A model generated the notes under the pieces. It had not been told where the DNA came from and searched no databases. It saw only the letters and a program-made list of their open reading frames with translations. A program made the position numbers and the translations under genes. Shown here one piece after another: positions 9,360 through 62,582 of a stretch of DNA of 64,000 bases (positions are counted from its first letter, which is position 1; the number at the start of each line of letters is the position of its first letter). This DNA comes from Gracilinanus agilis (lineage: Eukaryota): NCBI RefSeq assembly GCF_016433145.1, contig NC_058132.1, forward strand, positions 165,123,025 through 165,187,024, given 5' to 3'.

Positions 9360-10964
9360 TTAGCAAAAATTAGCCTCTAACCCTCCTGACTCTTTTACCT
9401 GGAGGAAACAACCCTGCTGCCCCACAAGATACCATCTTGCAGCCCAGAATCCCAGAGTGTTGGAGAAAGTTAATAATTTCAGCTCAGTTTTTTTTTATTA
9501 TTATAAGGTATTAATTATTGGGCTAAATTGAGAAAGTTTAACCTTATCTTACTCCTAGAAGTTTACTCTCTCTTTAAGGTCTTTCCTAAACCCCAATGTG
9601 GGTCTCAAGCATAGTAGCCATTTAAACCCTTTTTGTTCTCCCAAACCAGCTCAACTAAGGGACTCTCAGGAGTTTTTACCTTCACAGTTCCTAAAATAGA
9701 AAGCTTTTGTTTTCCCTCACTAACTTAGCCTTGGGCTAAAGCCTTTTTGCAGCCCTCCATTCAAAGGCTGATTGGCGCATGTCTCCATTTACTAGCATTA
9801 TGAAATCTTTACTCCTAGCCAGTACATAAGTAGGTTAGCACTACCTACAGTTAGGAAATAGATTTGCAACCAATTTAATAAGTAGAATTGCAAGCATGGC
9901 CCAGTTATCTGCCTATCTCAAATAGCTCCCATTCTGAGAGAGCAATACAGAGCTTACACTGCTCAAACTTTTGGGGTGGGGTGTCTTTTCTGACTACTAT
10001 TTCTGGATGCATTTGTCCTTGCAATTAGCTTGAGTAATCCTGAGATTTGGGGGGTGGGAGAGGTTCATCTCCCTATGCCCCCTTGCCATTTTGGCCTGCC
10101 CAGTCTCTGTAACATACACAATATGGGGTTTGTCCACACTGTGGGTATGGGGAACCCCAGAGGTGTGACCAAAGGAACCTAGATGGATGATGATACTGGG
10201 GAGGGGAAGGAACCTTAAAGAGTCTGGATATGAATTTTTAGCTTTTCAGACTCCATTGCTAACTATTCTAGATTTTTCCCCTCTAAATCGTGAAGAAGTC
10301 TCTGAAATGCAGCTACTGGAATTGGAGAAAAGGACTCTTGAATTCAGTGTCTATAATCCTGTCACATATATTGTATTTGCTAATTGTTTTAAAATTTAAT
10401 TTTGTTTTTTTTTAGTCATATCAATCTAATCTAATATAGTCTGTTATACTGAATCATTTAAAGTTACTATGTTTTGGCCATTAGCTATGTGTGCTGTTAC
10501 ATTGTCTTTATTTGTACTGCCCCCTATGATTGGACTGGAGAAAATACCATTGTAAAAGTCTATAAACAACTTGCACAAACCCTTTTCTGTGGCAAAACCA
10601 TAGGACCTTATGGATGCTGGGTTTGTTACCAGATCCATTGAGGTCACATGTTGCCTAAATAGCCTTTTGTTTCTTTTTGCCTTTGTTAATTGTCACATAG
10701 ATGATGATAGATGGACTCCATCAAACTGGTTACAACCTATAAACAACTTTTGGAGAATTTAATGATCTAAAATTTTTAATTGATTTTAAGGGGTCTTCAT
10801 AAGTGATTTTTCAGGATACCTAGGAGCACCACTACCTCTGACATCATTTGTCTACCTTTAAGTTGTTTGTAACAAAAGGTAAGGGTTCATTTAGTAGTTG
10901 AAGTGCAGTGCAATAGCACTATTGTATTCCCCACCTCCACATTTATTAAAAATGTAATGATGAG

Positions 10965-18461: not shown

Positions 18462-37046
<18,585 letters not shown>

Positions 37047-42400: not shown

Positions 42401-44619
42401 GTGTGAGAGATGTCAGTCCTGTCTTTGAACACCCCAGACATAGGAAGGGGAACAAGCAATGCTGAAGGAAGGTCTTTAAAAATGGTGCCTATTTTTAGTG
42501 GTTAGGATCTTTCTTAGAATTGAAGTTATCTCCTAGGTCTTCACTGTTCTCCCACTCTGCTCGTTTTAGGAAGAATTTGATCTCATACCTGAAACTCCAG
42601 AATATTTGCCCTTATCTTATTTTCTTCGAAGGAGTCTTTAGCTTCCTTTCCAGGATATAAAGGAGAATAGGACAGGGCCCTAGAAGCCCAAACATCATCA
42701 AATCAATTAAAAGCTTGCCTCACTGAAGGTAACCTAGGACAACCTTAATTTCTCAGTATCCCAGACAACTTCCCAAGACCATCAACTGGAGAGTAGATGC
42801 TGATCAGTTTTGGTATGTAGGAGTAAAAATGAATGAGTACTCCTAGTGTTTTAAAATATATATATATATATGTATATATATATAATATGTACATATGCAC
42901 ACACACACAGATATATATATATATAATTTAATAATAAACAAAAAGAGGAGAAAAAGAAAAGGAAAAGAATTTTTTTAGGAAAGTGAGCAAAGCAAAGAGA
43001 GCCAGAGACTCACACCTGCAGCACTTTACTAAAGCAAAGCCCAAAAAGAGCCCCATAGTGTGGGTTTCAGCCAAATTTATCTACGAAGCCTCTGTACATC
43101 AAATGAGGATGTACTTAAAAGGATGCTGAAAATGTAGCTCAGGTGTGGCAAATTTTTCACCTGCACACATATCTATAGTTCTTTATTGAGAGTTCCCCAT
43201 ATCAATGATGTTGGAGGAAGAGAAGGGGAGAGAGACAGAGACAGAGACAGAGGGATAGTGATGCTCATATGAACTCTTCTCCTAAGCCCCTCCTTACCTT
43301 GTAATGTGGTGGTGGAAAAAACTAAACTTTAATTAAGGAGGTGGCAACAACAAAATTTGCAACGGACAGGCAATGGAGTTTTCAATAAAATTAGCAGCAT
43401 ACTTAAGGATTCCAAAATGAAGAATTTGGAAGACCCTTGTATCTCTTTTGTTGATCCAATTTAGCTATCCCTTTGTATTTCTTCTTTCTGTCTCTGTTCC
43501 TTTTATTCTTGCTCTGAGTCTAAGGTTCAGGGATGTCTTGTCTGTGGTTAAGAAAAGAGGAATGCCAGCCAGGTGTACAGATCCTGTAAAAGAGGTATAA
43601 GAGAATAATGAGTAACAAGTTGTTAGAAACTCTTCTGCCAAGACCCCAGAAATTAGCCTTGGCCTCCCCACAGCAAACTCCAGGAAATGACTGAGATTCC
43701 AGACCTGGGAGGAAAAGAGTCATAAGCAAAAGTTCTGTTTATTTCTAGGAGAAAAAATAGTCTCCGTGAAGAGGGATAGAAGTGAAGAAGGGTATAGGGG
43801 TCTTTAGGAGCTATTTCACTCTCAGGCAAAGACATAAGGCATTAAACTATAACTATATAGCTTGTACTCCACCCAAGTCAATGGATCTCCCCACTCAACA
43901 TATCTACCTATTCCTGGTCTTTCCCTAGAAACTTGGAGTCTGGAAGTCACACAAAAACATACCCATGTGCCCCTTCCCTAACCCAACTCCCATAGCTCCA
44001 CCAAATTTGTCACATTTTGATGTTATGTCCCTACCAATCTCCCTGCTATGGCACCATGAGGCCATGCTTCTGATCCCTCCCTCCCTTCTGCCTCCTAAAG
44101 AGGTCCCATAGGGAACAATGGGATGTGGTTTATGATTCAAGGACTTCAAGAAGAATACTTTTTAGAGGACTACGGTTAAAAGATGACTAATCACAGAATT
44201 ACAGAATTTCAGAATGGGAGGGGACATTAGTTTCCAATAAACCATACCCAGAAGAGTCCCCATTACCAAATGTACAACAAGTGATCAACCATTCTCCTTA
44301 AAGACCTTCAGTGAATTCCTTATTTCTTAAAGCAGCTTGTTCTGTTTTTATATAATTTTAACCAGGTTTTTTTTTTTCCTTGACATCAAACCTATTTGTC
44401 TTTTTGCAATTTCCACTCATTATTCTTAATTCTGCCCTTTCAGAGTTAAGGTTAGCATTAGTATTGGCAGATTTGAATTGGGGGTTTGGGGGGAGGCAGG
44501 CAAGTCAAGACAAAGACCAGGGCCAGGTACAAGGGCAAGTCTAAAGGATCAAGGTTAGAGAATTTGACTCCTGTCTCTTTCTTTAGTACTTCCAAGGAGA
44601 TTAGTCCCTGTAACTGGGC

Positions 44620-44831
44620 CAGGCAGGAAGCAACGATTTCCTCAATGCTGCTTCCCTCTTAGGACAGGATTTATGGTTACAAACAACCGGTGCCCCGCCC
44701 AGCCATCCTCCTCCCTTTCCTCTTCCCCCCTCCCTCAATGAGCTCAGAGCAGCCGAACGCATTGCATGGGATAGAAGGGTCTAATAGACCCAGGGGTCCT
44801 TTGGGCCTTGTATGGAGAACTGAGACCAGGA
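44620..44831 (+). promoter_or_regulatory. ROBO4 proximal promoter / 5'UTR
   Basis: ETS core CAGGAAGC at 44624-44631 and GC box GCCCCGCCC at 44692-44700, just upstream of exon 1. Eutherian ROBO4 promoters are known to use ETS and SP1 sites. Confidence 0.5.
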
Positions 44832-44901
44832 ATGAACCCAGAAAGAATGAAAGTCCCAGAGACCTGTTTGTCCTTGTCTCTCCTGCTCCTGTTTATCACA
44901 G
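44832..44901 (+). CDS. ROBO4: ROBO4 exon 1 (signal peptide)
   Basis: [23 protein letters not shown], 70 nt, donor CAG|GTGAGT, phase 1. Confidence 0.85.
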
Positions 44902-47218
44902 GTGAGTCTAGATTGATGGAAAGGGTCCCCTCTTCACCTTTCTTCCCTTTCTTTGTTCTATCTAGTATACTTGCCTTTTGATTAAACCCTACTGAAGAAG
45001 AGAGGTGAAGGATTCTACTGCTCTGCTTGGGGATATGAAGAAGAATATATGGCCTACTTGGCTCTCTGACAACATGAGGGAGATGGGGTAGAAAGGTTTA
45101 TAACTCAGGGATTTGGGGACTTGATGTATCCTGAGTAAAAGCACATAGATGAAGCTAACATTCAAATGAGAACTATAGTCGTTGTAACATCTTAGGAGTC
45201 CTCAAATGAAGGACCCTGAGCTAGACTCTATGGCCAAGGACTTCCCATCCCAAATCCTTCTCCATCCTGAGGGCCTGTCCATCAGATGTTTGACCCTAGC
45301 TAGGCTAAGCTGCCATGTTTCAGACCAATCTCCTTCCACCTCTTCCAAGGGCTTGGAAATGAGAAGTCGTTGAGCATTCCATCTCCCTTCCAACCTCCTT
45401 GGCCCAGACCACCTTCCTTCCTCTTGCATCTCACAGCCAAGAGCCAGAACTGCCCTGACCAAGACTTTAAATCAGGCCTGGGATCTCTACCTGTGAGTCT
45501 AGTAACCCATAGCTATTAACAAGTATTCTAGGATCTCTAGAATACTTTTTTGTTTGTGAGGGCCAATGCAAGAAAGATACCTCAGGGAGAGAGGATCTTG
45601 AGAGTAGGGGAGAGTCTGGAAATCAAAGGATTGCTAAAGGGGGGGGGACATGGAGGTCTATTTGGTGGGGACCCTACATTTGGAAACAAGGCGGTTTGAC
45701 TGAATGAATGAAAAGGTTAAATGATAAATAGGGAATTTTTCAATAGCATTTGGAGGGAATAACAGCTAATATAGAATCTTGTGGGAGTAGGAATGATTCC
45801 AGAGTAGGAAGGTAAGTTGGGAGTCCTATCTTTTCCCATATCTTCTACCACCTTTTCCCACAGCCTTTCATACTAGTTTCCAGCTTCAAGGCCAGGATGT
45901 GGTAGCAGTGGTAGGGGAGCAAGTAGTTTGAGAATTTGGATCACTCTAGGCCCAAGGTCTCCCAGAGAAAGGATGGATAGCCTTTGGTGCCAGAGTCATG
46001 ATATTATTGGTAATTTAGGTCACAGACTCTGAAGGAATTCTGATGGATTCACAGCAGTGCAAGGAATCTGCCCCCCCCCCAGTCCCTCTTCATTTTTGCC
46101 AATTAAACCAGATAAGCACCCCATTATACTATCATCCCTTAAATATACACTGGATTTTTATTTCTGCTCTAAATGTCTCCTATCTCACACATCTGCCTTT
46201 CTATCCCCTCCTTAGCTGTCAAGCATAGTTCAACTTTATTCAAAGATTTACTGACAAGGAAAGTATAAAATTTAGAATGTGAATAGTAGGGTTCAAGAAT
46301 GATCACATTGCTCAAAAGTCAACTGGCTGGCAAAAATTTCCCAACACTAAATTTCCTAATAAAATCTAGTCTCCTGATCATTTTATTCAGGTCTTGGTGC
46401 TAGTATATTCATGGCTTCTGTTATATTGGAATAAAAAACCTTCATCCTTTGAGGCAGTGCAATAAAATGGAAAGCATGCTAGAGCTACCATCAGGGAACC
46501 TGGACTCAAATCTTGCCAAATTCCAAGTCTTTGGAAAAGTCACTTATCCTCTCTGGCTTCAGATTTTGTTTTCATTTATACAGTGAAAGGGTTGGACTAT
46601 ACAATCTCTAGTATCTCTTTCCATTCCAAATCGTTGAGCCCATAAGGCAAGGAAGTATTCTCCCATTCTCAAACTTAGAAAGACCTACCATAAAACTCAG
46701 ACCAATCCCTTAGCTCCTTGTGCCATCTGGCCTGCCTCACCATGACAGCACGTTAGTGTTATAATAAGCTGTATGCCCCCAATGAAAGGGTATGGGACGC
46801 TGATATGCGGTTCAACTCCAGCAAACCATCTATACTTACACCATCCTCTTTCAATGTAAATGAAATCATAACAAAGACTATCATTATACCTCTTCCCTAC
46901 AAAGTATCAGAAAAATTTACATAGCCAACAACTTATTACAGAAAATATTAATTACCATTTCTCTCTAAAATTCATAACAAAGTAAAACTATATATATATA
47001 TACATATATATACATATATATATATAGAGAGAGATAAGTATATATAGCTATCATTTCATCCTTATTAACTTCTTGCACTTAGTAACCATTTCACAGCTAC
47101 ACTGAGGACTTTAAAGAGTAGATTAGTTAGCAGACAAATATAGGAACAGTAGACACACATTTTAGAATATCCCCAAACCTTCTCAAGCCAGTTTCTTTTA
47201 GTCTTAGGCTCTCCCTTC

Positions 47219-47272
<54 letters not shown>

Positions 47273-50200
47273 ATTTTGGGGAGCAGACACTGGAGGGGAA
47301 AATGGAAGGGAAGTCCCAGAGGCTGGACTTTCAAAATTGCTCCTTAAAACTAAAGATGTAACTCCCACAGACTCATGTTCAAATGTATATGGCACCTCCT
47401 CTGTACTATCTCCCCTACTTATACTCACACTTTGGTATTAGATACCCAAGTTGATGTTCAGCATCCCTACTGGACATATTGTTTAATTGGGCTTTCTTGG
47501 GTTGTTCCACTCTGCAGTTTAACTCTACATTGCCAGAACTAGTCATTTCTTATAGGAAAATAGTATTCCATCACAATAATATACCTCAATTTGTTCAGCC
47601 ATTCCCCAGCTGATGGATATTCCCTTCAATTTCCAAATCTGTGCCACCACAAAAAGAGCCTCTATAAATATTTTGTACAGATAGGTCTTTCCCCCTTTTC
47701 TTTCATCTCTTTTTGGATCTCTCTAATGCTAGGTTAAAGGGTTTTATAGTTCTTTGGGTATAATTACAAATTATTGTCCAGAATGGCTGGACCAACTTAC
47801 AACTCCATCAACAATGCATTATTAAGAACAACTAGGTGGCTAGTGGATTGAGAGCTGTGGCCAGAGATAGGAGGTTCTGGGTTCAAATCTAGCTTCGAAT
47901 ATTTCCTAGCTGTGTGATTCTGGACAAGTTGATTAATCACCATTGCCTAGGTTTTACCACTCTTCTGCCTTGGAACTAAAATTGAAAGTTAGATTTTAAA
48001 ACAACAACAACAACAACAAAAATCCAATGCATTAGGGTCTCTATTTTTTCACAGCCCCTCCAGCATTTTTTCCCTTTTTTCTGTCATATCATCTAATAGC
48101 AGTGTGAAGTGGCACTTCAGAGTTGTTTTAATGAGCCTTTTTCTGATCAATAGTGATTTGGAGCATTTTTTCATATTATCATTAATAGTTTTGATTTCTT
48201 CTGTCAAAAACTGCCTATTTGTATCCTTTGACCATTTTGTAATTTGGGGAATAAATGGCTCTTATTTGTGTAAATTTGACTTAGTTCCCTAAATAGTTGA
48301 GAAATGAGGCCTTTATAAAAAATTTACTATATATAAAATATTTTAAAATATTACTTTATTGTCTATAGCACCTTTTAGCAAAATACAGTTTCCCTGGCTA
48401 TCCCTTAATTAGGCCCATTTTTGCTTTTGCTATGTCTGAGATCAAAATGGTGCCTTTTTAACTTGCCTTTTTAACTTCAGCTAAAAGCATAATAGATTCT
48501 ATTCTAGCCCTTTATTTTAACTCTGTGTATGTCTTTCTGTTTTAAGTGTGTTTCTTCTAAATATGTTATTGGATTCTGGTTTCTAATTCATTCTGCTATT
48601 GGCTTCCATTTAATGGATGAGTTTATTCATTCGCATTCATAGTTGTGATTAATAACTATGCATTTCCCATCATTCTATTTTCTTTGTTTCTGATTGCTGC
48701 CTCCTTTAACCTGTTCTGCCTTTTATCACAGCCTGTTTTTTTATCTCCTTCTCCTCCTGCTTCTCTGTTGGGTAAGATAGATTTCTATACACAATTAATT
48801 ACATATACACATATATGTATATATATTCTTCCTCTTTGAACCAATTCTGATAAGATTGAGACTCAAGCATTGCCTATCAATCCCACTTCTCCCCTCCACT
48901 GTAAAAGCTTTCCCTTCCATGGCTCTTTTACATGAGATTATTTTCTCCATTCTTCCTCTCCCTTCTCTCAATGCATTTTTCTTTCTCATCTCTTTTTTTA
49001 TATCATTCCAACATAACTGATTCACAACCATGCCCTCTATGTGTTGTTGTTTGGTCATTTCAGTCATGCCCACTTTTCATTACTCTATTTGAGTTTTCTT
49101 GGCAAAGATACTGGAATAGTTTACCATTTCCTTCTACAGCTCATTTTTACAGATGAGGAACTGAAGCAAACAGGATTAAGTGACTTGTCCAGGTCACATA
49201 ACTAGGAAATATTTGAGGATAGATTTGAACTCAAGTCTTTCTGGAAAGACTCCAGGCCTGGCACTCTATCCACTCTACCACCTGGTTGCCCTATCTATGT
49301 AGATTCCTTATAACTGCCCTAATAATAATAAAATTCTTAGGAGTTACATGTATCATCTTCTCACATGGAATGTAAACAGTTTAACCTTAATTGAATCCTT
49401 TATGATTTCTCTTTCATGTTTGTTTTCTTATGCTTCTCTTGAGGTTTGTCTTTGAATGTCAAATCTTCTATTTAGCTCTGGTTTGGGGGGAATTTTTTTT
49501 GAGGGGGGAGTCAGGAATGCTTGAAAGTGCTCTATTTCATTAAGTATCCATTTTTCATCCAGAAGGATCATATTAAGGTTTGATGAGTAGGTTATTCTTG
49601 GTTGTAATCCAAGTTTCTTTGCCTTTCAGAATATCATATTCCAAGCCCTCCACTTTAATATGCAAGCTGACAAGTATTGTGTGATCCTGATTATGGCTCC
49701 ACAATATTTGAACTGTTTCTTTCTGGATACTTGCAAGGCTCTTTGGCCTGGGAGCTTTGGAATTTGGCTAAATAGTTTTTATTTGGGGATCTTTTTCAAG
49801 AGGTAATTGGTGGATTCTTTCCATTTTTCTTTTACCCTCTGGAACTAACATATCGTGGAAGTTTTCCTTTATAACTTCTTGAAATGTGATACCTAGGATC
49901 TTTTTTTTGGGACATGGTTTTAAGGAGTCCAATAATTTTAAAATTATTTTTCCTCAATCTATTTTCCAGATCACTTGTTTGATGAGATGATATTTCATAT
50001 TTTCTTCTGTTTCATCATTTTTTGGACTTTCCCCACTAAAACCCTTACCTTCTGTCTTGGAATTAATACTGTATATTGGTGCCAAGGCAGAAGAGTACTA
50101 AGGGCACGGAAATTGGAGTTAGGTGACTTGCCCAGGGTCACATAGCTAGCAAGTGTCTGAGGTCAGTTTTGATCCCAGGATCTCCCATCTCAAGGCCTGG

Positions 50201-53200
50201 CTTTTTTATCCACTGAACCACTTAGCTCTCCCCATTCTTTTGACTTTTAAAAAATTGTTCTTGATGTCTCATAGAGGCATTGGCTTCTACTTCCTCGATT
50301 CTAATTTTAAAAAAATATTTGCATCAGTGAATTTTTGTCTCTTTTACCATTTGGCCAATTCTGTTGTTTTTTTAATTGTTATTTTCTTTAGTATTTTTAT
50401 GCCTCTTTTATCAAACTGTTAATTTTCATAATTTCTTTTTGCATCACTCTCATTTCCTTTCCTAATTTTTCCTCTACCACTCTTATCTCTTTAACTCTTC
50501 CAAGAATTCTCATTGGGTTTGTATCTGATTTGCTTTTTTTCCTTTGAGGTCTTGCTTACAGCTATTTTCACATTGTTGTCTTTTTCTGAGTTTTATTGGT
50601 CTTCCCTGCCACAATAGTACCTTTTTCTGGTCAAGTTTGTTAGTTGGTTGGTTGGTTGCTCATTTCCCCATCCTATTTCCTGGCTTTGACCTTTTTTGTT
50701 AAAGTTGGGCTCTGCTCACCTGAGAATGTGGAGAAACATCATCCCAAGCTTCAGGCTTTTTTATGTTGCTACTTTCAGAGCTCATTCTGGAGGACTGCAA
50801 GTTTTTGGTGCTTCCAAGGTGATGTGAGCTGAGGAAAGGTATATGTTCTGGTTTTTGCTCTCATCTTTACCAAGGAATAGTCCCTAACTGACTGCAGCAG
50901 CAAGTGCTAGCACTCTTCTTGACCCTGGAATTTTGACCAGATCTCCTGCTCTCCTATGGCTTTAAGATAGTGCTCCTCTCCAATCTGAATCTATTACCCA
51001 GAACTAGGTATGGGTACTAGAGTTGCCAAATAGTATCAGGTCCTCCATCCAGTGCCAGCAAAGGGATTTCTATACATTTCTTTCTGACAAATTGTCTGAC
51101 CCCCTTACCATCTCTGAGATGAGAGCTCCCAAAATCGCTACTGCTTTTGCTTTAGCAAAAGGACTATGTGCTTCAGGTTGACTCCCACCTTGGTGTCAAA
51201 ATTTCTCCTGCTGGTACCCTAAGTTGTCTTAAGCTGGAAAGCTATCTTACTGGTTCTTCCACTACAAAATTTGATTTGAGCCATAATTTTAAAGTTATTT
51301 GGAGGAGAACATTAGGAGAGTTTAGCTAGGTTGCTACCTCTACTCCACCATCTTGGCTCCATCCCACTTCATAAAGTTATGACTTTGTACTTTGTTGGTA
51401 TATTAATACCTTGTATATTTGGTTATTCTTCCTTTACTTTCTCTGATTCTTTCAAGCTGGAGGAGGGAAAAGGGAAACACCAAATCCTCTTCCCCTCTAA
51501 ACATATACATGCACACAAATTTGTAACACAACCAAAGAGAGCCTCCTTTGGTGAATCTTCATCCAAGTCATACCTCCTAACCATGGGTATCCCTTTTCTT
51601 CTGGGTCCTCTTTTCTTCCCACTTTATACCATTTCATTTGGTGATCTCATCAGGTCTCACAGATTCATTTCTAATCTCTATGCTGACGATTCCTACACTT
51701 TCTTAACCAACCTTGACCTTATTCCTAACCTCCAATCACAAATCTCTGTCTATTAGATATCTAGAAGTGGAAGTCTCATAGACATCTTAAAAATCAATTT
51801 ATTCAAAACAAAACTCATTATCTTCCCCACCCCATCCCCCAATGCTTCCTCTCTCCCTAACTTTCCTATTACTGTCAAAGGCACCAACATCTATCTTCCT
51901 AGTCACTTAGGCTCAAACCCCAACTGTTATTTCCTCACTCTCTAACCCCTTCCCCAAGCCAATGTATTCTTTCTTCATAACATCTCTCCTATATGGCTCT
52001 TTCTCTCCTCTGACACTGCCACCTTTGGGCAGGCTCTCATCATCTCATACCTGGATTATTGCAATAGTTTTCTATTTTCTCTGTTTCAGGCCTTTGCCAG
52101 CTCTAGTCCATCCCTTATGTAAGTGTCAAGTTCGCCCTCCGAAAGTGAAGATCCAGGATCAAATAAAAAATTGTCTTTCATTCAAGGCCTTTCATAATTT
52201 GGCTCCTTTATAACTTGGTTCCATTCTTTCTACATCAAACTCCTACTTCCTATCCCCCATGTACTAGTGACATTGACTTCTTTGATGTTCCTTGCTCAAA
52301 ACATTCTGTCTCCAGACTGGATGTTTTCCCTGGCTATACCCATGTTTGGAATTCTCTTCCTATTCATCTTCATCTCCTGTTCTCCCTCTGAGGCCTTGAT
52401 AAAATACAATCTTCTACAAGAAGCATGTTCTGATCCCCCTTAATGCGAATGTCATTATTTTGTTGATTTTCTCCAACTTGTCTTTGACAGAGTTTGTTTC
52501 TACTTTGTTGTTTGCATATTCTCTCCTCTATTAGGCTGTGAGCTCCTTATGAATAGAGACTAATTTTTTGTTTAATTTGTGTTGTTGTTATTTTGCCTTT
52601 ATTTCTATTTTTAGTGTTTAACACAGTACTTGGCACATAGTAGCATAGTTCTTGGCACACGATTAAATGCTTATTGACTGTCAGACCCCATTCCCACCTT
52701 TGTCCACAGAGATTACTAGAGGATTAAACAAAGAGGAGCAATGCAGTGATTCCTGTGTATGTATGTGTGTATGCGCGTGCAAGAGTGTGCACCTGCTTGT
52801 GCTCCATGCACATAGCAACCAAGTCAGTAGGACAGAGGGAAAGCTGAGCAGTTTGGTGGTTGTTTGAGGTGAAGGGATGGGTGAAAAGGTCTATGGAGAA
52901 TAAGAAGCTGAGATAGCAATTGTGTGAAATCAGAGGTTAAGGTCAGGATGAATGGGGAAAGGGGGTCAAGGGTTAAATTGAATGGAGTGAGGATCTNNNN
53001 NNNNNNNNNNNNNNNNNNNNNNNNNNNNNNNNNNNNNNNNNNNNNNNNNNNNNNNNNNNNNNNNNNNNNNNNNNNNNNNNNNNNNNNNNNNNNNNNNNNN
53101 NNNNNNNNNNNNNNNNNNNNNNNNNNNNNNNNNNNNNNNNNNNNNNNNNNNNNNNNNNNNNNNNNNNNNNNNNNNNNNNNNNNNNNNNNNNNNNNNNNNN

Positions 53201-56200
53201 NNNNNNNNNNNNNNNNNNNNNNNNNNNNNNNNNNNNNNNNNNAGATAGACTGATACAGAGCTTCTGGGTATATGAGGACTCAGAACATGTGTATGAGATG
53301 AAGGATTGAGATTGGGATGTATGTGAGGTGAGGGGCTGAGTTTGTATGTGAGAGGGAGCATCTCTGTAATCAGCGAGTCTTTGTGGAACAATTGTCTAGG
53401 TGAGAAATGTGGGAAGTTGAAATCTCTTGGGTCCCAATATATGGAGAATGAAGAATGATGATGAAAGAAAAAGATTTCTGTAGGGTTAAGGCTTTAGGCT
53501 AAAAGCAAAAAAGGGGTTGGGAGGGAGGCCAAGAAGTTGAGAGGGTAGTTGTAGTTTCTTCAAATGACTGCTCCCTCTTCTCTCCCATTTGGGCTCCATT
53601 CCATCTCTTCTCCCCCTATAGAATCTCTGGTCCTGGCTGAGCCCCTGGAGCTGCTGGCTATGCATGTCCAACTGGAAAATGTGACTCTTTTCTCTACTGA
53701 CCAAACGCCTGGCCCAGTTGTATGGCTAACTTGGAAGGTAAAAAGGGTGATGAAATTAAGCAATGTTTTTGGAAAAATAAAGAAAAGCAATGCAATGAGA
53801 CCTTAAAATCTTTAATACCAGGGTTTTCCTGTGGCTTCTTAATTCCTTACCTTTTTCTATAGGCAAGTGGCCCTGCTGCTCCTGCAAAGGTCTATAAAGC
53901 CCTGTTCCGGGCCCGGCAATCTGCAGCAGGGGAGGTAGCAGGGCAGCCAGATGGCCAATGGAGTGAGTCCTTGCTGATGGGTAGACAGAGTGCAGAACTT
54001 CGGGGCCTTAGCTGGGGCTATGATTATGAATTTAAGGTGAGGCCATCTTCTGGTTCAGCCCAAGGCCCTGACAGCAACGTTCTCATCTTGAGGTTGCCAG
54101 AGCAAGGTAAGTTCCACATCTCCCAATGACAACACCCTTTTGACATCACGTAGGGACCCTCCAGCTCCTGACCTGGAATCTTTCCTAGCTTGCTCTAGAA
54201 CAGTGGTTCCCAAACTTTTTTGGCCTACTGCTCCCTTTCAAGAAAAAATATTACTTAGCGCCCCCTGTCACATACTATCACTGCCCCCTTACAGTTATTC
54301 ACCGCCCCCAAATGCACCTGTGGCATCACCGCCCTCCTGGATCACTGCAGCACCCACCAGGGGGTGGTGGCACCCACTTTGGGAATCACTGCTCTAGAAC
54401 CTCCCATGCTATTCCCTGTATGCCCATCCCTCTCAGGTTGCCAGAATGTTAGGTTCTACTCTTGAGGTGGCTTTTTCCCAGGACAAAGTCACTGTGGAAG
54501 AAGCCTCTGCTCCTGCCCAATGTGCTCAGGACCTCGTGCCAGCTTCTTTGGAGTTCTCTGCTCTTCAAATTTTTTTAATTCTGTTCCATTTTCCACAGCC
54601 CCAGATACCTCTCACAATATCCCTCAATGACTCACTTCTTTTCCTTCAGTGCCCAGTGCCCCACCTCAGGCTGTTACCCTGAACCCTGGAAATGGCAGTG
54701 TCCTGGTCAGCTGGGATCCACCTCCACCTGAGACTCACAATGGCATTATCCGTGGCTACCAGGTACACATTTCCCCTACCCTCATTCCGCAAGTCCCCAC
54801 ACTCCTTGATTCACATTGCCCCAGCTAGCCAGGCCATGCCTAGAGTTCTCCAAACTTATGGTGGGGGATGTGGAGAAGAAAGAAGGGCTATCAGAGATGG
54901 CACCTAGAAACAGATACAGATCCATGATTTCATAGATGTCAACATTTCCTCCATTGGTGAAGACTAATCAATTACTTTAGATCTTAAAGGGACCTTAGAG
55001 AGCCTCTACTCCAGTCCCCTCATTATTCAATGAGGAAATTGAAGCCAAGAAACATGGAGCAACATTCCCAAAGTCACATAGCTAGCTAGTGGCAGAGCCA
55101 AGACCAGGACTCAGGTCTCCTGCCTCCAAAGTTGGTGATCTTTCCAACTAACTACTCCAGGCAGTCTCTGTATGGAACAGGAAGAAAACATGGCTAGAAA
55201 TAAGGATTCTAGCCATGTTTTTGAAGCCCCCCAAACACCTTAGGCAGTGGCCTTCCTCCTCTCCTATCCTTCCCATCCTATGCTATGTATGGTTAACATG
55301 GGGGAAGTCTCTGTTGGCAGGAGAATCATAGGGTTGGCATCAGAGAAGTTGGAAGAGATTTCTCAGGATAATAAACAGCTAGGTTGATCCCGAGTATACA
55401 ATCTGACTTCAGAGTGTAGGACTCAGACCCTTGAAGATTTGAGAAGGGCACTTTGCCTACTGCTACACTGTATCCTTAGGTCTGGACCTTGGGCAATGCC
55501 TCACTGCCCCGTGCCAACTGGAGCGTGGTTGGTGGTCGCACTCAGCTGGAGATTGTAACTGGAATGCCTGGTTCCTATTGCATTCAGGTGGCAGCGGTCA
55601 CTGGAGCTGGGGCTGGGGAGCCCAGCAGTCCTGTCTGCCTCTCCTTAGGTCAGAGCAATATCTATCTTCTGGTAGACATCCCTCTACCTCCCCAAGCCTC
55701 CTTCCTTCCTTCCTTCCCTACTCTCACCTTCTTTTCTCTGTGTCCCAGCAGGCCCTTTTTGCCAGTCTTCCACATACCCTACATCCTTTCCTCTCCAGAC
55801 CTTTCCTTTCCTTGCCATATAACCCCTCCCTCACCCCAAATCCTCCCCCAATGAACTCCTATATTCTCTAGAGAAGGCCAACCGAGCCGCACGAGATTCT
55901 GTGGGCCTGGGTCCCCCAACCCTGGAGCGGCTTCAAGAAGCACTGCGCCGGCCAGAGGTGATCGCTAGTGGCGGGGCTGTGCTCTGGTTGCTGCTGTTGG
56001 GGGCTGCAGTTTGTATTCACCGCCGGCGCAAGGCCAGAGCCCACCTAGGCATGGGTGAGTGAGAAGTTGGGAGCTGAGTGGCACAATGGCATGTAGAGAA
56101 TGGACTAAATAAAGATAGGAAAGCTGGGTTGTGAGGAGCCAGTGGGCAGGAGGCAGGGGCTAGACAGGGATGTCCAGCCATCGGGTCCCTGGAATGCAGG

Positions 56201-59038
56201 ATGAAGCTTTAGGAGAGCCACTAGAATTCAGTTTCTGTTTTCCCCTTCCTCAGGTCTATACAGATACACCAGTGAAGATGCCATCCTTAAGCACAGGTGA
56301 GAGAAGGGACCTGTGGGGAACTGATGGGGCAGAGAGTATATGCAACAGAAGAGTGGATGGGGTGTACCCTTCTTGCCCTGGATTTTCTCTGTCTGGCTAC
56401 CAGTGAGTTTCAGATCCAGAAGACTGAATCTCACTATTTTTTACCATCCTGAGTACCAGCAGGGAAAACTGGGCCTCAGGTTCCTAGCTTCTCTACTGCT
56501 TCCAGAAAGCAGACTGGCATATGCTCAAATTAACTGCATTTGGGGTATAATGTCTGAAGTTTGAAATGGAAATTATGTTACAGAGTATCATTTCCCCCTC
56601 TGAAGTCTTTAAGTCAAGTAGCTTACGCTACATGTGCTATATTAAATATATGGCTAAGCCCTTTGGGCTCTATCTCCAGTGTATGAAAGTGGTCTAGGGT
56701 GAAGGTCCATCCCTGCCCATGATTCATGGAAACCTCACAGACCCCAGGCCAGAAGATCAGGGAGGCACCTCTAATTTCCCCCATTACATTACCATGTCCC
56801 AATCTATGCATTATTTAGGTTATCCGGGCCATGGTTAACTTGGCTAAGAGATTTCCAAGAGCACTGGATGTGGAATTAGAAAGACCTGAGTTCATATCCA
56901 GCCTCAGACATGTAATAGCTGAGTAATTATGGATAAGTCACTTTTCCTTTGCCTCAGTTTCTTCATCTGTAGCACCTCACATCCTTTATAAATCTTAAGA
57001 TGCCATGTAAATTCTATTATTATTATCTCAATCTTTCCTAAGACTTTTAAGTCCTCATCCTGTCTTCCATCTAGCTTGTGATATTTTCAGTTCTTGTAAA
57101 TGTATTCATCTCTGCTTCTCTTGCTCATCCTTACCTTCATTCTTGTGCTGATACTAGGACTTTTTCTTAAGGGATTTTTTTAATGCCTCCTAGATCTGGA
57201 GATTCTACTGTAGAAGGTAAGAGAATTCAGAACTGGAGGGGAGGTTTAGATATCATCTAATAATGAGATCACAGGAGCATAGCCTACAGATGAGGAATAA
57301 GGCCCAGAGGGATGAGTGACAAGATCACACAGGTAGTATAAGGAGCAGAGATGACTCAGATTCTCCCAATATCAAGAATGGTGAGGGGCAATGGAGAAGG
57401 AACTGAGCCTTGTGGTTAAGAACAGTCAAAAACATCCTTCCACAAATGTATCTTCTGGCTCTTAGAACTGGAGCCGTGAACTGAAGCCTTGGTTAGCTGG
57501 GACCTAACCCCATTTTGTGTTTCTGATTTCTCTAGGCTAGACAGAAGTGACTCTCCCTGGCTGGCAACCACATGGCGATCCACCTCTGGCTCTCGGGATC
57601 TCAGCAGCAGCAGCAGCCTTAGCAGCCAACTGGGAGGAGACACTAGGGATACGTTAGACTGTCGGCGTTCCTGTAAGCTCCCCCTCTCTAGACTGGGACC
57701 CTCTATTCCCAAAGCAAGGGCTTGGGTGATAGAATCAAAGCTTCAAGGAAAATTGAACTGGAGGAATGGGGGTAGGGGAGCTAACCTTAATGCTTACCTC
57801 TTCTCATTGCAGTGATTTCCTGGGATCCTCGAAGCCCTGGTGTCCCTCTTCTCCCAGACACCAGCACCTTTTATGGCTCTCTTATGACTGAGATTTCCAA
57901 TGGCCCTCTAATCCCCCCAGGCCCCAGGGCCCCACCTATCAGGCGGTTTCCACCTCAGCTGGCTAGGCTCTCTAATCCCTGGCCTAGTTTGGACAGTCTC
58001 TGCAATGCTCCAAGAATACCTTCTCCCCATCTCTCCTTGACTCCTACAGAAGCCTGGAGAATAGTAAAGAAGCAGGGTAAATTGTGTTCAAAGACAATGG
58101 CCTAAAGAAATAAATAGGGAAGAAGGGGGCTAATACAACAATTTTCACCAACTCTCTATCTTATCCAAAGACAAAAGTGGAGGGAATTGAGGTTTTTCTA
58201 GTTGTTAATGTCTAACTAAAGAAGAAGAAGAACACTAAGGGAAAAGTTTCCATTGAAGAGTCTCTAGTGCATGGAAAGAAGTTTACACAGATATCAAATG
58301 AAGTCCCCTGTTTCAATCAAGTCACTCTAGTCACAGGTTTTATTCTTATAAGAGACTGAGCGACATCTCAGGTCTGAAGATTGTCCTGACACAGATGATC
58401 CTCCTTACTGGTGTCAGTTGACCCATTATCTTGGTTGACTCTAACCTTGACTCTGCTTCCAAAGTCCCCTTAGACTTACCTAACATACATGGTCATTAGA
58501 GATTAAAAGCATTTTTTTTTTTTTGCATCGTGTGTGTGTATGTGGGGGGGGGAAGATATCGACAAGGGGAAGAGAATCAAGTAGGGAGTAGAGAGAAAGT
58601 GAGGATTAAAGACTTCTCAGGGTGGGCATGGGGACAATGTCTCTTTCTTTTCCTCTGATCCTTGATCCTTTGGAGATCATTTGGGATGAGTCCCAAGCTC
58701 CTCACATTCCCCAAACAGCTTCTCTGACCACTCCTTCTTTTTGCAGAGCTGCATCAGGCTAATAGTTCTCCTCTGCTCCGTGCCAATCACCCCGCAGGGC
58801 ACTGGGCCTGGGAGCTGGCTGGTGCAAAGGACTTCAAGAACACTTCCCAAGTCCCAGGTAAGACCCTTTAATGTGATCTGAGAGGGGACAGAAATCATGG
58901 GTTTGGGCACCCACTATCCCACATCATGTGTTTCTCAGTTTACGATCCTTCCCTTTGAGCTTCAATACCCCAGTTATTGAGTAGGATCTGGTTTGGATTG
59001 TAGACATTTTAGGGAATCCCTACTCAAATACATGGAGG

Positions 59039-59083
<45 letters not shown>

Positions 59084-61789
59084 CAGATTTATGGTGCTTC
59101 CACTCTGCTCCTGTGTTAAGAAAGGCCCTGCTACAGTATTCTAGTCTCCTATCCTCCAAACTCCTGATAACATTTTGATGCTTTTGGCTTCAAATTGCCA
59201 TGCCCCTTTCTCCTTTATCTTACCTTAGAACAGTGTGAATTTCTTACGCAAGGACAATTTTCAAGGAGAAGCATAAGATCAGAAATTATGTATAGGCAGG
59301 GTTGCCAAAAATATATGCCCCATGGTGAGCTGTACTTTCTTCAAGTCTTATAAATGTGCCTTAATTAGTTGCTCAGTCCCTCTTGTGCTGCCAGAAGTGG
59401 GGCATCACCTTGCTAAGACCATAGATCTGCCTCCTAGCTGCCTTACCTCTCCTTTGTCTTCTCTGCTCCAAAGGACCATTCTCCCATCCAGAATGCCAAG
59501 AGTGAATAGGTGGCTCAGCTCAGCTTCTGCATGATGGGTTTGGCCTACTGGTTTGTTTCTAACCATAGCCACAGCCTATGCTGAAGTTCCTATGTACCCT
59601 GTGCACCCTGACACCAGGGCTCCTCTAATATTGTACTGGGTGACCTCAGCAACAATGTCTTCACCCTCTGACTTGTTCTAGAACAGGTACACGTCAAACT
59701 GATAATAAATATCCCAGAACCAAAAACACTCCCAAAGTTCATGAAGACACCTTATTTCTTCACAGGCTAGGGCCAGGGGCTGCTGGGGGCCCCAATGTCC
59801 CTCACACCCTGGCTTGTGCTCTCCAGGAGCTGTACCCCGTACTCTGGCTGCCTGGCGTGCCATTGGACCCCAGCTTCTCAACCCCAGGAATGAGCTGGCT
59901 TCGAGGCCCCTTCCCCCAGCACCCCCTTCTCCCATCCGAGGGGCTTCCACTAAAGGCCAACAGAATCAGTAAGAGAGAATGGGGGAAAAGATATCCGGAG
60001 CTTTAGCTCCTTGGGAAGTCAGGAGTAAGATGGAATTACCAGAGATCCTGAGGTGGGAAGGGACTAAAGCCATTGAGGGCAGAGAAGTAAAAGGGGGCCA
60101 CGCTGACAAATCCATCTTCTTTCACTGACTAGATCCGGTAAAGACTTCATAGAGCCTCAGATTCCATCCTCCCTGCCCCTAGTGGCAGCCATCTCTCCCA
60201 GCCCCTTGGCCTCCTCCCTTTCTGGCCCCAGCCCAACCTCTAGCCGCCTGTCTAGCTCTTCACTGTCCTCCTTGGGAGATGAAAGGGATAATGTGTTGAC
60301 CCCTGAAGATGTGGCCCTGTGCCTGGAGCTCAGTGAGGATGATGATGAGACCCCCAGGTGAGTGACTAGGGGAAGGTTGAGGACGGGGTAGTGGGCTGGG
60401 GGAGGTAAACAACAAAACTGGATTCCTTCTGAAACTCGCAGGCCCCTAACCGGTCATTTCATGGTTGTAATGTAATGAAATGGAGACTTTTGAACCCTCC
60501 TCTAAAGTCTGTTTGCTACCCTAACACTTTATCCCCTTCCAGGAACAGTGGGACTCCTGTCCGAAGGGCCCCATCACCACCTACCAGCTATGGCTATATC
60601 AGCATCCCATCAGCCTCTGGATTAGGGGAGGTGGAGGGGAATGCAGGTGGAGCGGGACCAGAGGGAGGCATTCTGCTATGTCCACCTCGCCCCTGCCATA
60701 CCCCTACACCCAGTGAAGGCTCTCTGGCAAACGGTTGGGGTTCAGCCTCAGAGGACAATGCCTTCAGTGCCAGGGCCAGCCTTGTCAGCTCCTCAGATGG
60801 TTCTTTTCTTGCCGATGCCAACTTTGCTCATGCCTTGGCTGTGGCTGTGGATAGCTTTGGCTTTGGCCTGGAGTCCAAGGATCATGACTGTGTCTTCAGT
60901 GGTATGTTCCTCTGCCCTTTAAGTATCTTCAAAGTGATACCTCTTCTTCTTCTGATCATCTTCTAACTCCACTGGGAGGGTAACAAGCAAAGAATTCCAG
61001 ATTCTTGAACCTAGTTGTTATTCTATCTCCCTATCTCCAGGTCTTTGAACTCAGACAAATGTGGACAGTGGTTTCTTTTCTCAAAGATCTGCAAGAAAAT
61101 TATTCTAAAGTCTTCCGTTAGTTACTTTCTTCTAATGTTTCATACCTTTTCATTGCCAGCATGTTCTGTTTTCTTTCTAACTTCAGTTTCTCCAGCTGAA
61201 GTGTCTAGTATTTCCTCTTTTTCTGAACTCAAGGAAGACGGAATTGGCCCATGATATACCAAACAAGATGTAGATAATTCTTTCCATGTCACTATCAGAC
61301 AACTCAGGATTCTTTATATCCACCCACCCAAGGTCTCTTATTCCATCCATTCTGACACTGAGACCTTCGGCAGAGTGCCAAGTACTAACTGAGGGACACC
61401 TTTCTAATATCTTGTTCATTCCCATCAGATTTCTCTCCACCTCCTTCACCTCAAGATGACTTTGCCCTTACTTCTACCCTGACCCTGCCAGTGTGGGAGT
61501 GGAGTTCAAATTGGATTGAAGAGATGGAGAATAAATACAGTCATCGGCTATGTAGGGGGCTACCTTCTTCTTCCCCTGAGATGGAGAAGGGTCCATCCAG
61601 AGGGAGGCAGAAGACTGGCCCTTTTGTCCCTAAAACCCATGGTGAGTGTCTTTGTGGAATAGGGGAAGAAAGTAGTCGAGGCAGGGAGAAAGTATTACTC
61701 TTTGAGCGCAAAGTGGGTACCCCCTGGAAGTGAACAAATAGCAATGCCAACCCCATTTTAATTCAACTTCTTCATCTCTAGACTCTTGA
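44832..61789 (+). CDS. ROBO4: ROBO4, predicted Ig-less form: join(44832-44901,53622-53737,53863-54106,54650-54762,55480-55648,55872-56054,56254-56296,57536-57672,57813-58076,58747-58857,59827-59968,60133-60357,60543-60901,61429-61641,61782-61789), 2397 nt, 798 aa
   Basis: Every listed exon was translated by hand: open frame, GT-AG, compatible phases, homologous to recalled ROBO4 (two FNIII domains, [25 protein letters not shown]). The exon 1 to exon 5 junction and the last exon are inferred. Confidence 0.88.
45225..45550 (+). pseudogene. ROBO4: Decayed ROBO4 exon 2 (Ig1) remnant; 3' bound approximate
   Basis: [15 protein letters not shown]...[14 protein letters not shown] vs recalled MAQDSPPQILVHPQD...ARMSCQASGQPPPT. 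In-frame TGA at 45371-45373, frameshifts, TCESSNP* at 45489-45512 (vs TCEASNR). Confidence 0.9.
45864..46009 (+). pseudogene. ROBO4: Decayed ROBO4 exon 3 (Ig2, first half) remnant
   Basis: [22 protein letters not shown] then, after a frameshift, [11 protein letters not shown], vs recalled [24 protein letters not shown]...PTVSWWKDGKPL. Stops at 45929, 45947, 45978 and 45999. Confidence 0.92.
47221..47268. repeat. (CT)n microsatellite
   Basis: Seen directly. Confidence 0.95.
47500..51370 (-). mobile_element. Fragmented antisense LINE-1, interrupted by SINEs (about 47825-48000 and 50037-50235) and a MAR1 (49043-49291)
   Basis: T-rich L1-like 3' and 5' segments with nested SINE signatures; bounds approximate. 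Confidence 0.6.
51600..52683 (+). mobile_element. L2 LINE 3' portion
   Basis: ctctatgctgacgattcc (YADD-like RT motif) and L2-type tail cttggcacatagtag...ttaaatgcttattgactg. Confidence 0.7.
52710..52868 (+). pseudogene. ROBO4: Decayed ROBO4 exon 4 (Ig2, second half) remnant
   Basis: [16 protein letters not shown] at 52806-52856 vs recalled MCVATNSAGHRESRAAR; acceptor ctttgtccacag retained; TGA at 52845; internal GT-rich expansion. Confidence 0.8.
52997..53242. other. Assembly gap (246 N)
   Basis: Seen directly. Confidence 1.
53622..53737 (+). CDS. ROBO4: ROBO4 exon 5
   Basis: [23 protein letters not shown]...VVWLTWK, phase 1 to phase 0. Confidence 0.93.
53863..54106 (+). CDS. ROBO4: ROBO4 exon 6 (FNIII-1)
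   Basis: ASGPAAPAK...[14 protein letters not shown]...[12 protein letters not shown]. Confidence 0.95.
54201..54391 (+). mobile_element. hAT (Charlie-like) MITE in a ROBO4 intron, related to 5135-5327
   Basis: Same TIRs; perfect 8-bp TSD ctctagaa at 54193-54200 and 54392-54399. Confidence 0.92.
54650..54762 (+). CDS. ROBO4: ROBO4 exon 7 (FNIII-2)
   Basis: [38 protein letters not shown]. Confidence 0.95.
55480..55648 (+). CDS. ROBO4: ROBO4 exon 8 (FNIII-2)
   Basis: [18 protein letters not shown]...[13 protein letters not shown]. Confidence 0.95.
55872..56054 (+). CDS. ROBO4: ROBO4 exon 9 (transmembrane)
   Basis: [30 protein letters not shown]. Confidence 0.95.
56254..56296 (+). CDS. ROBO4: ROBO4 exon 10
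   Basis: [15 protein letters not shown]. Confidence 0.93.
56845..57010 (+). mobile_element. MIR
   Basis: gaaagacctgagttcatatccagcctcagac...gcctcagtttcttcatctgta core. Confidence 0.7.
57536..57672 (+). CDS. ROBO4: ROBO4 exon 11
   Basis: [30 protein letters not shown]...LDCRRS. Confidence 0.95.
57813..58076 (+). CDS. ROBO4: ROBO4 exon 12
   Basis: [23 protein letters not shown]...EAWRIVKKQ. Confidence 0.95.
58747..58857 (+). CDS. ROBO4: ROBO4 exon 13
   Basis: [12 protein letters not shown]...KNTSQVP. Confidence 0.92.
59039..59081. repeat. (GT)n microsatellite
   Basis: Seen directly. Confidence 0.95.
59827..59968 (+). CDS. ROBO4: ROBO4 exon 14
   Basis: [18 protein letters not shown]... Confidence 0.92.
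60133..60357 (+). CDS. ROBO4: ROBO4 exon 15
   Basis: [13 protein letters not shown]...[15 protein letters not shown]...TPR; acceptor position slightly uncertain. Confidence 0.88.
60543..60901 (+). CDS. ROBO4: ROBO4 exon 16
   Basis: [13 protein letters not shown]...[25 protein letters not shown]...DCVFS. Confidence 0.95.
61429..61641 (+). CDS. ROBO4: ROBO4 exon 17
   Basis: [11 protein letters not shown]...[15 protein letters not shown]..., donor G|GTGAGT. Confidence 0.92.
61782..61789 (+). CDS. ROBO4: ROBO4 exon 18 coding part (DS*)
   Basis: Strong acceptor ttcaacttcttcatctctag|AC TCT TGA; short terminal peptide as in eutherian ROBO4. Confidence 0.6.
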
Positions 61790-62334
61790 TTGGGAAAATG
61801 AAAGTCCCTAGAAATGGTGTGGAAGCTGCTGCCTATCTGCCTTCAAATATGGGGACATGGATATTTGAAGTCTCTCCAGTGTTCTTCCACTTTCTGTGAC
61901 TCAAGATGCAACCCCTTTTCAGAGGTTCAACAGAGTTTCTCCCCTCCTGGGACTAAGGAAATAGAAACACACAACTGGAGACCCTTAGGGGTCAGGAACA
62001 AACTCTGCATTCCTAACCATGCTTTCTAGTCTGGTCCCTGAATCTAGACATCTCTTCTGGAGGAATAGACTCTCCTATATTTGCCCTTGGGATCAGAGTA
62101 GTGAGTAAAATGAGTTTCTTTTGTGGAACACAATGAAGGGCTATTAGGATAGAGGGAAGAATGGATCATCTCAGGCCTTCACTTCATTCCCATAGATCCT
62201 CACTGCCTCCTTCCTACTGGGACTACAGGTAACATTGTTTTTCCTTCCCAGGGCCGGCCATCCTCCCAGGTCAAACCATGTTCTCCCTCCCTTCCCTTTC
62301 AAACTCGCCTCCCATCTCACCCACCCCAAGTGTA

Positions 62335-62340
62335 AATAAA
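62335..62340 (+). terminator. Candidate ROBO4 polyadenylation signal
   Basis: AATAAA about 550 nt after the predicted stop. Confidence 0.5.
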
Positions 62341-62392
62341 GAGAAATGTTGCTTGAACCATTGAAATTCTATGCTAGTGATAAGGGCTAGAG

Positions 62393-62582
62393 CTGGGGTA
62401 GGCAAGTATGGCTCTGGAGCCATATCAGGTTCCACCTCCTGACCAGCCAGTCTAGACAGAGCCCCAGGATGTGCCCCAGGGGGCCCTTCAGCCCCGACCC
62501 ATATTCCAGTGCCTTCCACCTCCATCCTCCTCCTTCTGCAGGCGTTTATGGCTCTCACAGCCAAAAAGGTTGCCGACCATTG
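62393..62582 (+). mobile_element. hAT MITE with termini related to 32286-32492 but a different interior
   Basis: Perfect 8-bp TSD ggctagag at 62385-62392 and 62583-62590; right end ggttgccgaccattg. Confidence 0.8.

Follow-up and report, generated by a model that had tools for sequence, protein, structure and literature searches.

The 64-kb window analysed here, the whole stretch of 64,000 nucleotides taken from contig NC_058132.1 of Gracilinanus agilis, carries on its plus strand, between 44.8 and 61.8 kb, the gene of ROBO4. While the mammalian ROBO4 ectodomain is composed of two immunoglobulin (Ig) domains followed by two FN3 domains, the ectodomain encoded here has the two FN3 domains and no Ig domain, and the window gene is thus a ROBO4 orthologue of derived architecture. 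Exon 16, used as a query against 1.8 billion representative proteins, has its best match in wallaby ROBO4 (833 aa, 93%), followed by gorilla ROBO4 (1007 aa, 76%; 78% by tblastn). Searches by tblastn with tammar wallaby and gorilla ROBO4 give a colinear match to the window from exon 5 to exon 17, the last large exon, and the Ig1 and Ig2 parts of the gorilla protein taken alone add weak matches at 45221-45340 and 45878-45976. The similarity extends from the FN3 domains through the membrane-spanning segment to the cytoplasmic part, with the ROBO4-specific C-terminal block included. The upstream neighbour is HEPACAM, with an Ig exon at 34948-35193; downstream, the Monodelphis and wallaby loci contain a minus-strand multi-Ig gene (1394-1397 aa) which, by analogy with the human locus, we take to be ROBO3, so that the gene lies downstream of HEPACAM and tail-to-tail with ROBO3. 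Its sequence and surroundings identify the gene as orthologous to ROBO4 and as that of a didelphid marsupial near Monodelphis.

The gene model was obtained by working out how the Monodelphis RefSeq protein is divided into exons in the Monodelphis locus (L001) and projecting this exon chain onto the window; the exons of the devil were projected from the wallaby, and the koala was covered at protein level only. All 15 retained exons (exon 1 and 14 downstream, Table 1) are bounded by canonical AG acceptors and GT donors, and the spliced open reading frame (ORF) runs from the ATG at 44832 to a lone terminal stop at 61787-61789. The donor of exon 1 (TCACAG/gtgagt) is in phase 1, as is the start of exon 5 at 53622. 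A previous sequence-only reading of this DNA had proposed that exon 1 and the 14 downstream exons are open with canonical splice sites and that splicing of exon 1 to exon 5 gives a protein of 798 aa; the projection bears out the former and reproduces the latter exactly. The resulting mRNA encodes a type I membrane protein of 798 aa in which a hydrophobic leader precedes the two FN3 domains, followed by the transmembrane helix and the complete ROBO4 tail; the tail keeps a proline-rich stretch and is under constraint.

The position of the start codon differs among marsupial models. The start of the Monodelphis and Dromiciops models (MGQKGL..., window 44766-44831) has a TAG at codon 3 in the window, and the wallaby, koala and devil models have their start codons elsewhere. 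The segment upstream of MNPE(R/G)M is probably untranslated, since the models have in common only what follows from this motif on.

Intron 1 contains the decayed remnants of exon 2 (Ig1) and of exons 3 and 4 (the two halves of Ig2). A profile hidden Markov model (HMM) was built from 23 eutherian ROBO4 Ig1-Ig2 sequences and run on ORF pieces from all six frames of the window and of the Monodelphis, wallaby and devil loci. Its matches in the window are colinear within intron 1, at 45230-45340 (E 2.6e-5), 45480-45506, 45866-45928 (E 0.014) and 52773-52844, and each of the four marsupial loci has two to four ordered pieces within this intron; the sole other match of like strength, both in the 64 kb of the window and in the devil locus, is the true HEPACAM Ig exon. 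Aligned as DNA with exons 2, 3 and 4 of the horse (330, 158 and 121 nt, with identical exon lengths in the manatee), the remnants are full-length, 50-53% identical to the horse and interrupted in all three cases by frameshifting indels and stop codons. Exon 2 has indels of +2, -3, -1, -7 and +10 nt, reads for 49 codons before its first stop and has lost the Ig1 Trp codon. Deletions of 11 and 1 nt, four stops in the ancestral frame and the change of the first Ig2 Cys from TGT to TTT are found in exon 3, and exon 4 has a 14-nt deletion, a 51-nt (TG)n-rich insertion and three ancestral-frame stops. The Trp-Trp pair of Ig2 is lost too. The sequence-only reading had placed three colinear Ig1/Ig2 remnants at 45225-45550, 45864-46009 and 52710-52868 and reported the loss of conserved Ig Trp and Cys residues; the remnants were found again at the positions given in Table 1, and the Ig1 Trp, the Ig2 Cys and the Ig2 Trp-Trp are indeed gone. 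A Pfam scan of the raw fossil ORFs gave no match, and recovery was achieved only by the ROBO4-specific profile and the DNA alignment to the horse exons.

Table 1. Exons, exon remnants and assembly gap of the ROBO4 gene in the window
Feature	Positions	Strand	Observations
Exon 1	44766-44901	+	usable ATG at 44832; phase-1 donor CAG/gtgagt; projected from Monodelphis
Fossil exon 2 (Ig1)	45225-45555	+	HMM E 2.6e-5; blastn against horse exon 2 E 2e-4; 52% identity
Fossil exon 3 (Ig2, first half)	45864-46009	+	HMM; DNA alignment; lesion tally
Fossil exon 4 (Ig2, second half)	52712-52868	+	HMM; DNA alignment; lesion tally
Assembly gap, 246 N	52997-53242		intronic, after fossil exon 4 and before exon 5
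Exon 5 (second of the coding exons here)	53622-53737	+	phase 1 start; begins first FN3; RNA junction to exon 1
Exon 6	53863-54106	+	first FN3 domain; RNA junction 54106/54650
Exon 7	54650-54762	+	second FN3 domain begins
Exon 8	55480-55648	+	second FN3 domain; RNA junction 54762/55480
Exon 9	55872-56054	+	juxtamembrane region and transmembrane helix; RNA junction 56054/56254
Exon 10	56254-56296	+	RNA junctions at both ends
Exon 11	57536-57672	+	cytoplasmic; projection and RNA
Exon 12	57813-58076	+	cytoplasmic; projection and RNA
Exon 13	58747-58857	+	cytoplasmic; junction 58857/59827 from a loose end in three RNA runs
Exon 14	59827-59968	+	cytoplasmic; proline-rich stretch
Exon 15	60133-60357	+	cytoplasmic; projection
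Exon 16	60543-60901	+	conserved C-terminal block; projection
Exon 17	61429-61641	+	projection
Exon 18	61782-61789	+	final two codons (first completed by one exon 17 base), then TGA

The surroundings of the fossils have changed as well. Fossil exons 3 and 4 are separated by an intron (46010-52711 in the window) that measures ~4-7 kb in marsupials versus ~160 nt in horse and manatee, which implies large insertions postdating the death of the exons; fossil exon 4 itself is invaded by (TG)n and (AG)n microsatellites. In the wombat, Ig1 remains open over its first half, with its Cys and Trp kept, and Pfam Ig_3 reaches 23 bits (cut-off 30) with half a domain covered. Two homology-based Ensembl models of this species (P0223, P0224) translate bits of the fossil Ig exons.

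Transcripts of the window's species were available as four RNA runs (X22, X23, X24 and X43), whose contigs were aligned over 53243-59242. Spliced contigs, which establish that the runs are RNA-derived, contain the junctions 54106/54650, 54762/55480, 56054/56254, 56296/57536, 57672/57813 and 58076/58747, and a loose end in three runs adds 58857/59827, making seven junctions beyond that of exon 1 with exon 5. Other RNA runs, with only ~10% of the words and probably from a related species, were left out of this alignment. A run search with exon 1 as sole query mainly picked up other organisms sharing few words with it, but showed exon 1 to be present in X22, X24 and X43. In X22, one contig has 132 extra letters ahead of position 53620 that end in GTCCTTGTCTCTCCTGCTCCTGTTTATCAC, which has a single exact match in the window, at 44870-44899; the AG that comes next is shared by the exon 1 end and the acceptor. 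The 44901/53622 junction, by which exon 1 is joined directly to exon 5, is thus present in this contig, which provides, in the window's own species, the RNA check that had been called for; its main weakness is that the junction occurs in this contig alone.

The presence of an assembly gap in the intron ahead of exon 5 leaves the reading frame unaffected because of its intronic position, but it raises the question of whether the apparent loss is an artefact, with intact Ig exons hidden in the gap or misassembled and the fossils being chance similarities. Indeed, the gap, of unknown true length, begins 129 nt past fossil exon 4, and two of the four HMM matches in the window are weak when taken singly. 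However, each of the three exons is represented by a remnant outside the gap, and the remnants are in order, so that none is missing. Furthermore, the flanks of the gap are colinear and on the same strand with the Monodelphis locus, where the left one ends at 9953 and the right one starts at 10061; the 107 nt between them would therefore not accommodate an Ig exon (121-330 nt). Three gapless chromosome-level marsupial loci share the fossils and hold nothing but fossils, intron 1 is without any other Ig-like ORF, and the RNA contig passes directly from exon 1 to exon 5. We consider the probability of such an artefact to be negligible, and the possibility of intact Ig exons in the gap, which had been foreseen as fatal to the idea of a loss, falls with it.

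Fossils in the same order within intron 1 are found in the window, Monodelphis, the tammar wallaby and the Tasmanian devil. These four marsupials have in common a 7-nt deletion in exon 2; an 11-nt deletion, the replacement of Cys by Phe and a TGA as codon 49 in exon 3; and another TGA as the final codon of exon 4. Since these lesions are shared by didelphids and Australian orders, the common ancestor of the four already carried the dead exons. Outside marsupials, echidna ROBO4 keeps Ig1 and Ig2, a protein probably from the platypus (best match echidna) keeps Ig2, Pfam detects three Ig domains in kiwi ROBO4, and lungfish and skate ROBO4 appear, from reading their sequences only, to contain three Ig-like repeats. 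The occurrence of intact Ig domains in echidna, kiwi, lungfish and eutherians and of dead exons in all marsupials checked places the loss on the marsupial stem; as far as these sequences tell, it is bracketed between the marsupial-eutherian (therian) split and the marsupial radiation. A molecular-clock date was tried and dropped, the rates based on synonymous divergence (dS) within and between mammalian groups being inconsistent. Ig-less models joining exon 1 to exon 5 are present in RefSeq for nine species (Monodelphis, Dromiciops, Trichosurus, Petaurus, tammar wallaby, koala, wombat, bilby and devil), and in the devil locus the ORF from exon 1 to exon 5 is likewise intact.

The fossils and the retained exons have evolved under different regimes. 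Distances between fossils among marsupials (K80, 0.11, 0.26, 0.35 and 0.30) match the dS that the live exons give for the corresponding pairs (0.12, 0.30, 0.34 and 0.28, respectively), and the fossils have therefore been neutral throughout the marsupial radiation. On the other hand, the pairwise ratio of nonsynonymous to synonymous divergence (dN/dS) in exons 5-18, over ~775 shared codons, is 0.18-0.22 among the four marsupials and 0.176 between horse and manatee; by part, it is 0.18-0.30 in the FN3 ectodomain and 0.14-0.20 in the tail. Exons 5-18 are thus under purifying selection as strong as in eutherians. These values bear directly on the view that marsupial ROBO4 is, as a whole, a transcribed unitary pseudogene in which the frame of exons 5-18 is a residue, a view which could draw on the three consecutive dead exons and on an annotated start codon that varies by species. 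Against it, an ORF of ~800 aa is intact in ten marsupial species with dS up to 0.34, ectodomain and tail alike have the low dN/dS seen in eutherians, the splice sites are canonical and in use, and at the same locus it is the fossil exons, unlike the live ones, that are neutral. Lesions and neutrality occur together in exons 2-4 only and do not extend to the gene as a whole, whose death we regard as very improbable. The proposals of the sequence-only reading that the retained exons are under purifying selection and that the loss is old and domain-specific are consequently upheld, the latter by the frameshifting deletions shared between didelphids and Australian marsupials and by the neutral divergence of the fossils; the dating in other marsupials and in monotremes for which it had called is given by the fossils of Monodelphis, wallaby and devil and the intact Ig domains of the echidna.

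Altogether, in-place remnants, lesions shared across a clade, intact outgroups and an expressed bypass that preserves the frame are what is expected of domain loss by exon decay in a live gene. We consider it highly likely that the Ig1-Ig2 exons were lost in stem marsupials and that the rest of ROBO4 has remained live. In the sequence of events that we propose, the exons for Ig1 and Ig2 would have fallen out of use on the marsupial stem and then decayed neutrally; exons 2-4 all being phase 1-1, a splice from exon 1 to exon 5 would have stayed in frame. Several points weigh against this reading. The search for Ig exons was confined to the ROBO4 loci, and a second ROBO4-like copy may exist at another place in the marsupial genomes. 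The junction of exon 1 with exon 5 comes from one contig of one run, the tissues are coded, and the evidence is at the level of RNA and not of protein. Low-depth unspliced contigs span the exon 5 acceptor (53523-53691), so that alternative transcript starts are possible. The motif at the start of exon 5 is not identical across marsupials, which makes a single conserved cleavage site doubtful, and the role of signal peptide is a predicted one. Lastly, the consequences for ligand binding are drawn from eutherian experiments alone.

Pfam detects an FN3 signal in the ectodomain exons, and the AlphaFold model of the N-terminal 300 aa of the Monodelphis protein consists of a leader helix and two FN3 domains, with pLDDT values of 72-93. 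The best matches of this model in the PDB by Foldseek are ROBO1 (4HLJ, E 7e-16) and the FN2-3 pair of ROBO3 (6POK, E 2e-15), at 31-33% identity. In eutherians, the end of the signal peptide (GGMA/QD) is encoded by exon 2. At the start of exon 5, the window has ESLVLA where eutherians have EPQDYK and the echidna ETPASARD, and this start is hydrophobic in all marsupials. The leader may act as a composite signal peptide, whose hydrophobic core would come from exon 1 and whose polar end and cleavage site would be provided by the altered start of exon 5.

It could also be that the Ig-less mRNA is conserved although its product is not a surface receptor, the leader being an uncleaved anchor or failing altogether and the function being intracellular or exerted at the level of RNA. 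The death of exon 2, source of the end of the eutherian signal peptide, and the differences among marsupials in the motif that replaces it are compatible with this. However, all marsupials retain the hydrophobic core of the leader, and hydrophobic codons at the beginning of exon 5 are found in marsupials only; moreover, the dN/dS of 0.18-0.30 of the FN3 ectodomain would be hard to explain if it were never lumenal or at the surface. We therefore hold a non-surface product to be unlikely.

Another way of keeping Ig domains would be to supply them in trans or by fusion, as suggested by dasyurid HEPACAM-ROBO4 read-through models that put two HEPACAM Ig domains before exon 5. Such models exist in RefSeq for devil, Antechinus and Sminthopsis and in Ensembl for the devil. 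In these, however, the HEPACAM transmembrane helix and part of its tail are kept, which would give a two-pass topology with intracellular FN3 domains. The exon 1-exon 5 ORF is intact in the devil, for which models of 802/804 aa exist as well, and none of these fusions was seen in the window's species, where the one contig running upstream from exon 5 is made of exon 1 sequence. A contribution of Ig domains by this route is thus most improbable, and the dasyurid fusion models are probably annotation or read-through artefacts. They comprise "ROBO4" models of ~1100 aa and an Ensembl "HEPACAM" model (P0081, P0230, P0227, P0231 and P0232; devil locus L003, 1001-41776). In all of these read-through products the HEPACAM part is fused to ROBO4 either at exon 5 itself or at an acceptor located 27 nt before it, two transmembrane helices are present, and the Pfam Ig matches are those of HEPACAM. 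Together with the wombat Ensembl models that translate fossils, they are probable annotation errors brought to light by this analysis.

Comparison with known systems situates the marsupial receptor, for which we retain the loss of the Ig exons from a live gene. It shares with eutherian ROBO4 (gorilla P0002, horse P0082) the genomic position, with HEPACAM on one side and ROBO3 on the other, the arrangement of exons from exon 5 on, 68-70% protein identity over the FN3 pair, transmembrane helix and tail, and an equal purifying selection. It differs by an ectodomain of two FN3 domains instead of two Ig and two FN3, exons 2-4 being dead, and by the five residues after the exon 5 boundary, PQDYK in eutherians and SLVLA in the window. 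A stepwise loss of Ig domains has been described in the family, with five Ig and three FN3 domains in ROBO1-3 and fewer in ROBO4 (PMC10084454, citing Xu et al. 2021). The marsupial case continues this N-terminal trend, from three Ig domains in the kiwi and two in echidna and eutherians, to an end point of zero, but it is specific to marsupials and has the dead exons still in place. Likewise, some eutherian models skip Ig exons (Mus caroli X2 without Ig1, P0145; Urocitellus X3 without Ig2, P0100) and keep the frame because these exons are phase 1-1; the marsupial mRNA is equivalent to jointly skipping exons 2, 3 and 4. While the eutherian forms are optional and minor beside the full-length one, the marsupial exons are destroyed and the short form is the sole possibility. 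Finally, the FN2-FN3 pairs of ROBO1 and ROBO3 (4HLJ, 6POK), the best structural match to the retained ectodomain, are a tandem placed under five Ig domains and FN1 in these receptors, whereas the pair makes up the whole ectodomain of marsupial ROBO4.

A literature search combining Robo4 with marsupials or with domain loss returned no description of the marsupial case, Xu et al. 2021 being outside its scope. We are dealing with an undescribed variant of a known receptor, whose Ig-less protein is already public as automatic RefSeq models in nine other marsupials. The statement of the sequence-only reading that no description was known thus stands for the papers found but not for the databases, where these models already carry the Ig-less protein.

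As regards function, the binding of UNC5B has been mapped to the ROBO4 Ig domains (PMC5123080, citing Koch 2011), as has that of SLIT3 (PMC8921330), and the cytoplasmic domain was found dispensable for permeability control in mice (PMC5123080). By analogy, the marsupial receptor could not make the Ig-dependent contacts of its eutherian counterpart with UNC5B and SLIT3, and its ligand binding would be altered or absent. The tail is the best-conserved part of ROBO4 in marsupials, and the conserved role would fall to the tail together with the FN3 pair and the membrane-proximal segment. We tentatively propose, giving it somewhat less than an even chance, that the core function of ROBO4 may be Ig-independent, through cis-signalling or scaffolding by the FN3 domains and tail or through an FN3 ligand, and that the UNC5B axis may be specific to eutherians or replaced in marsupials. 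ROBO4 is a much-studied endothelial receptor and a drug or vaccine target, and there is still dispute as to its ligands and the way it acts. Marsupials reverse the reported picture, as the Ig domains have been gone since before their radiation and the FN3 domains and tail are conserved; this natural deletion mutant makes it testable which ROBO4 functions require the Ig domains. It is also a clean case of domain loss via exon death in a living gene, with fossils that are readable and datable.

Some additional features of the locus came to light in the RNA runs. Exact contigs cover 53243-53520 in all four runs and continue into the gap, including in X43, where the ROBO4 exons are barely covered. 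Two low-depth contigs (53523-53677 and 53533-53691), unspliced over the exon 5 acceptor, could correspond to pre-mRNA, a repeat or a separate transcript start, and ~55 nt ahead of exon 5 there is an ATG in frame with it (MTAPSS...). An Rfam search of 44000-62500 found zero RNA families. In the intron after exon 6, a ~200-nt element at 54193-54397 has terminal inverted repeats (CAGTGGTTCCCAAAC and its near-complement); with a contig depth in the thousands in the four runs and many divergent loose ends, it looks like a high-copy repeat resembling a miniature inverted-repeat transposable element. The intronic segment 56865-57077 reaches a depth of 15-44 in all four runs, with none in the adjoining intron, and is possibly a repeat or an embedded transcript. 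Finally, position 57947 in exon 12 is a C in X23 and X43 and a T in the window, X22 and X24, which is probably a polymorphism among individuals.

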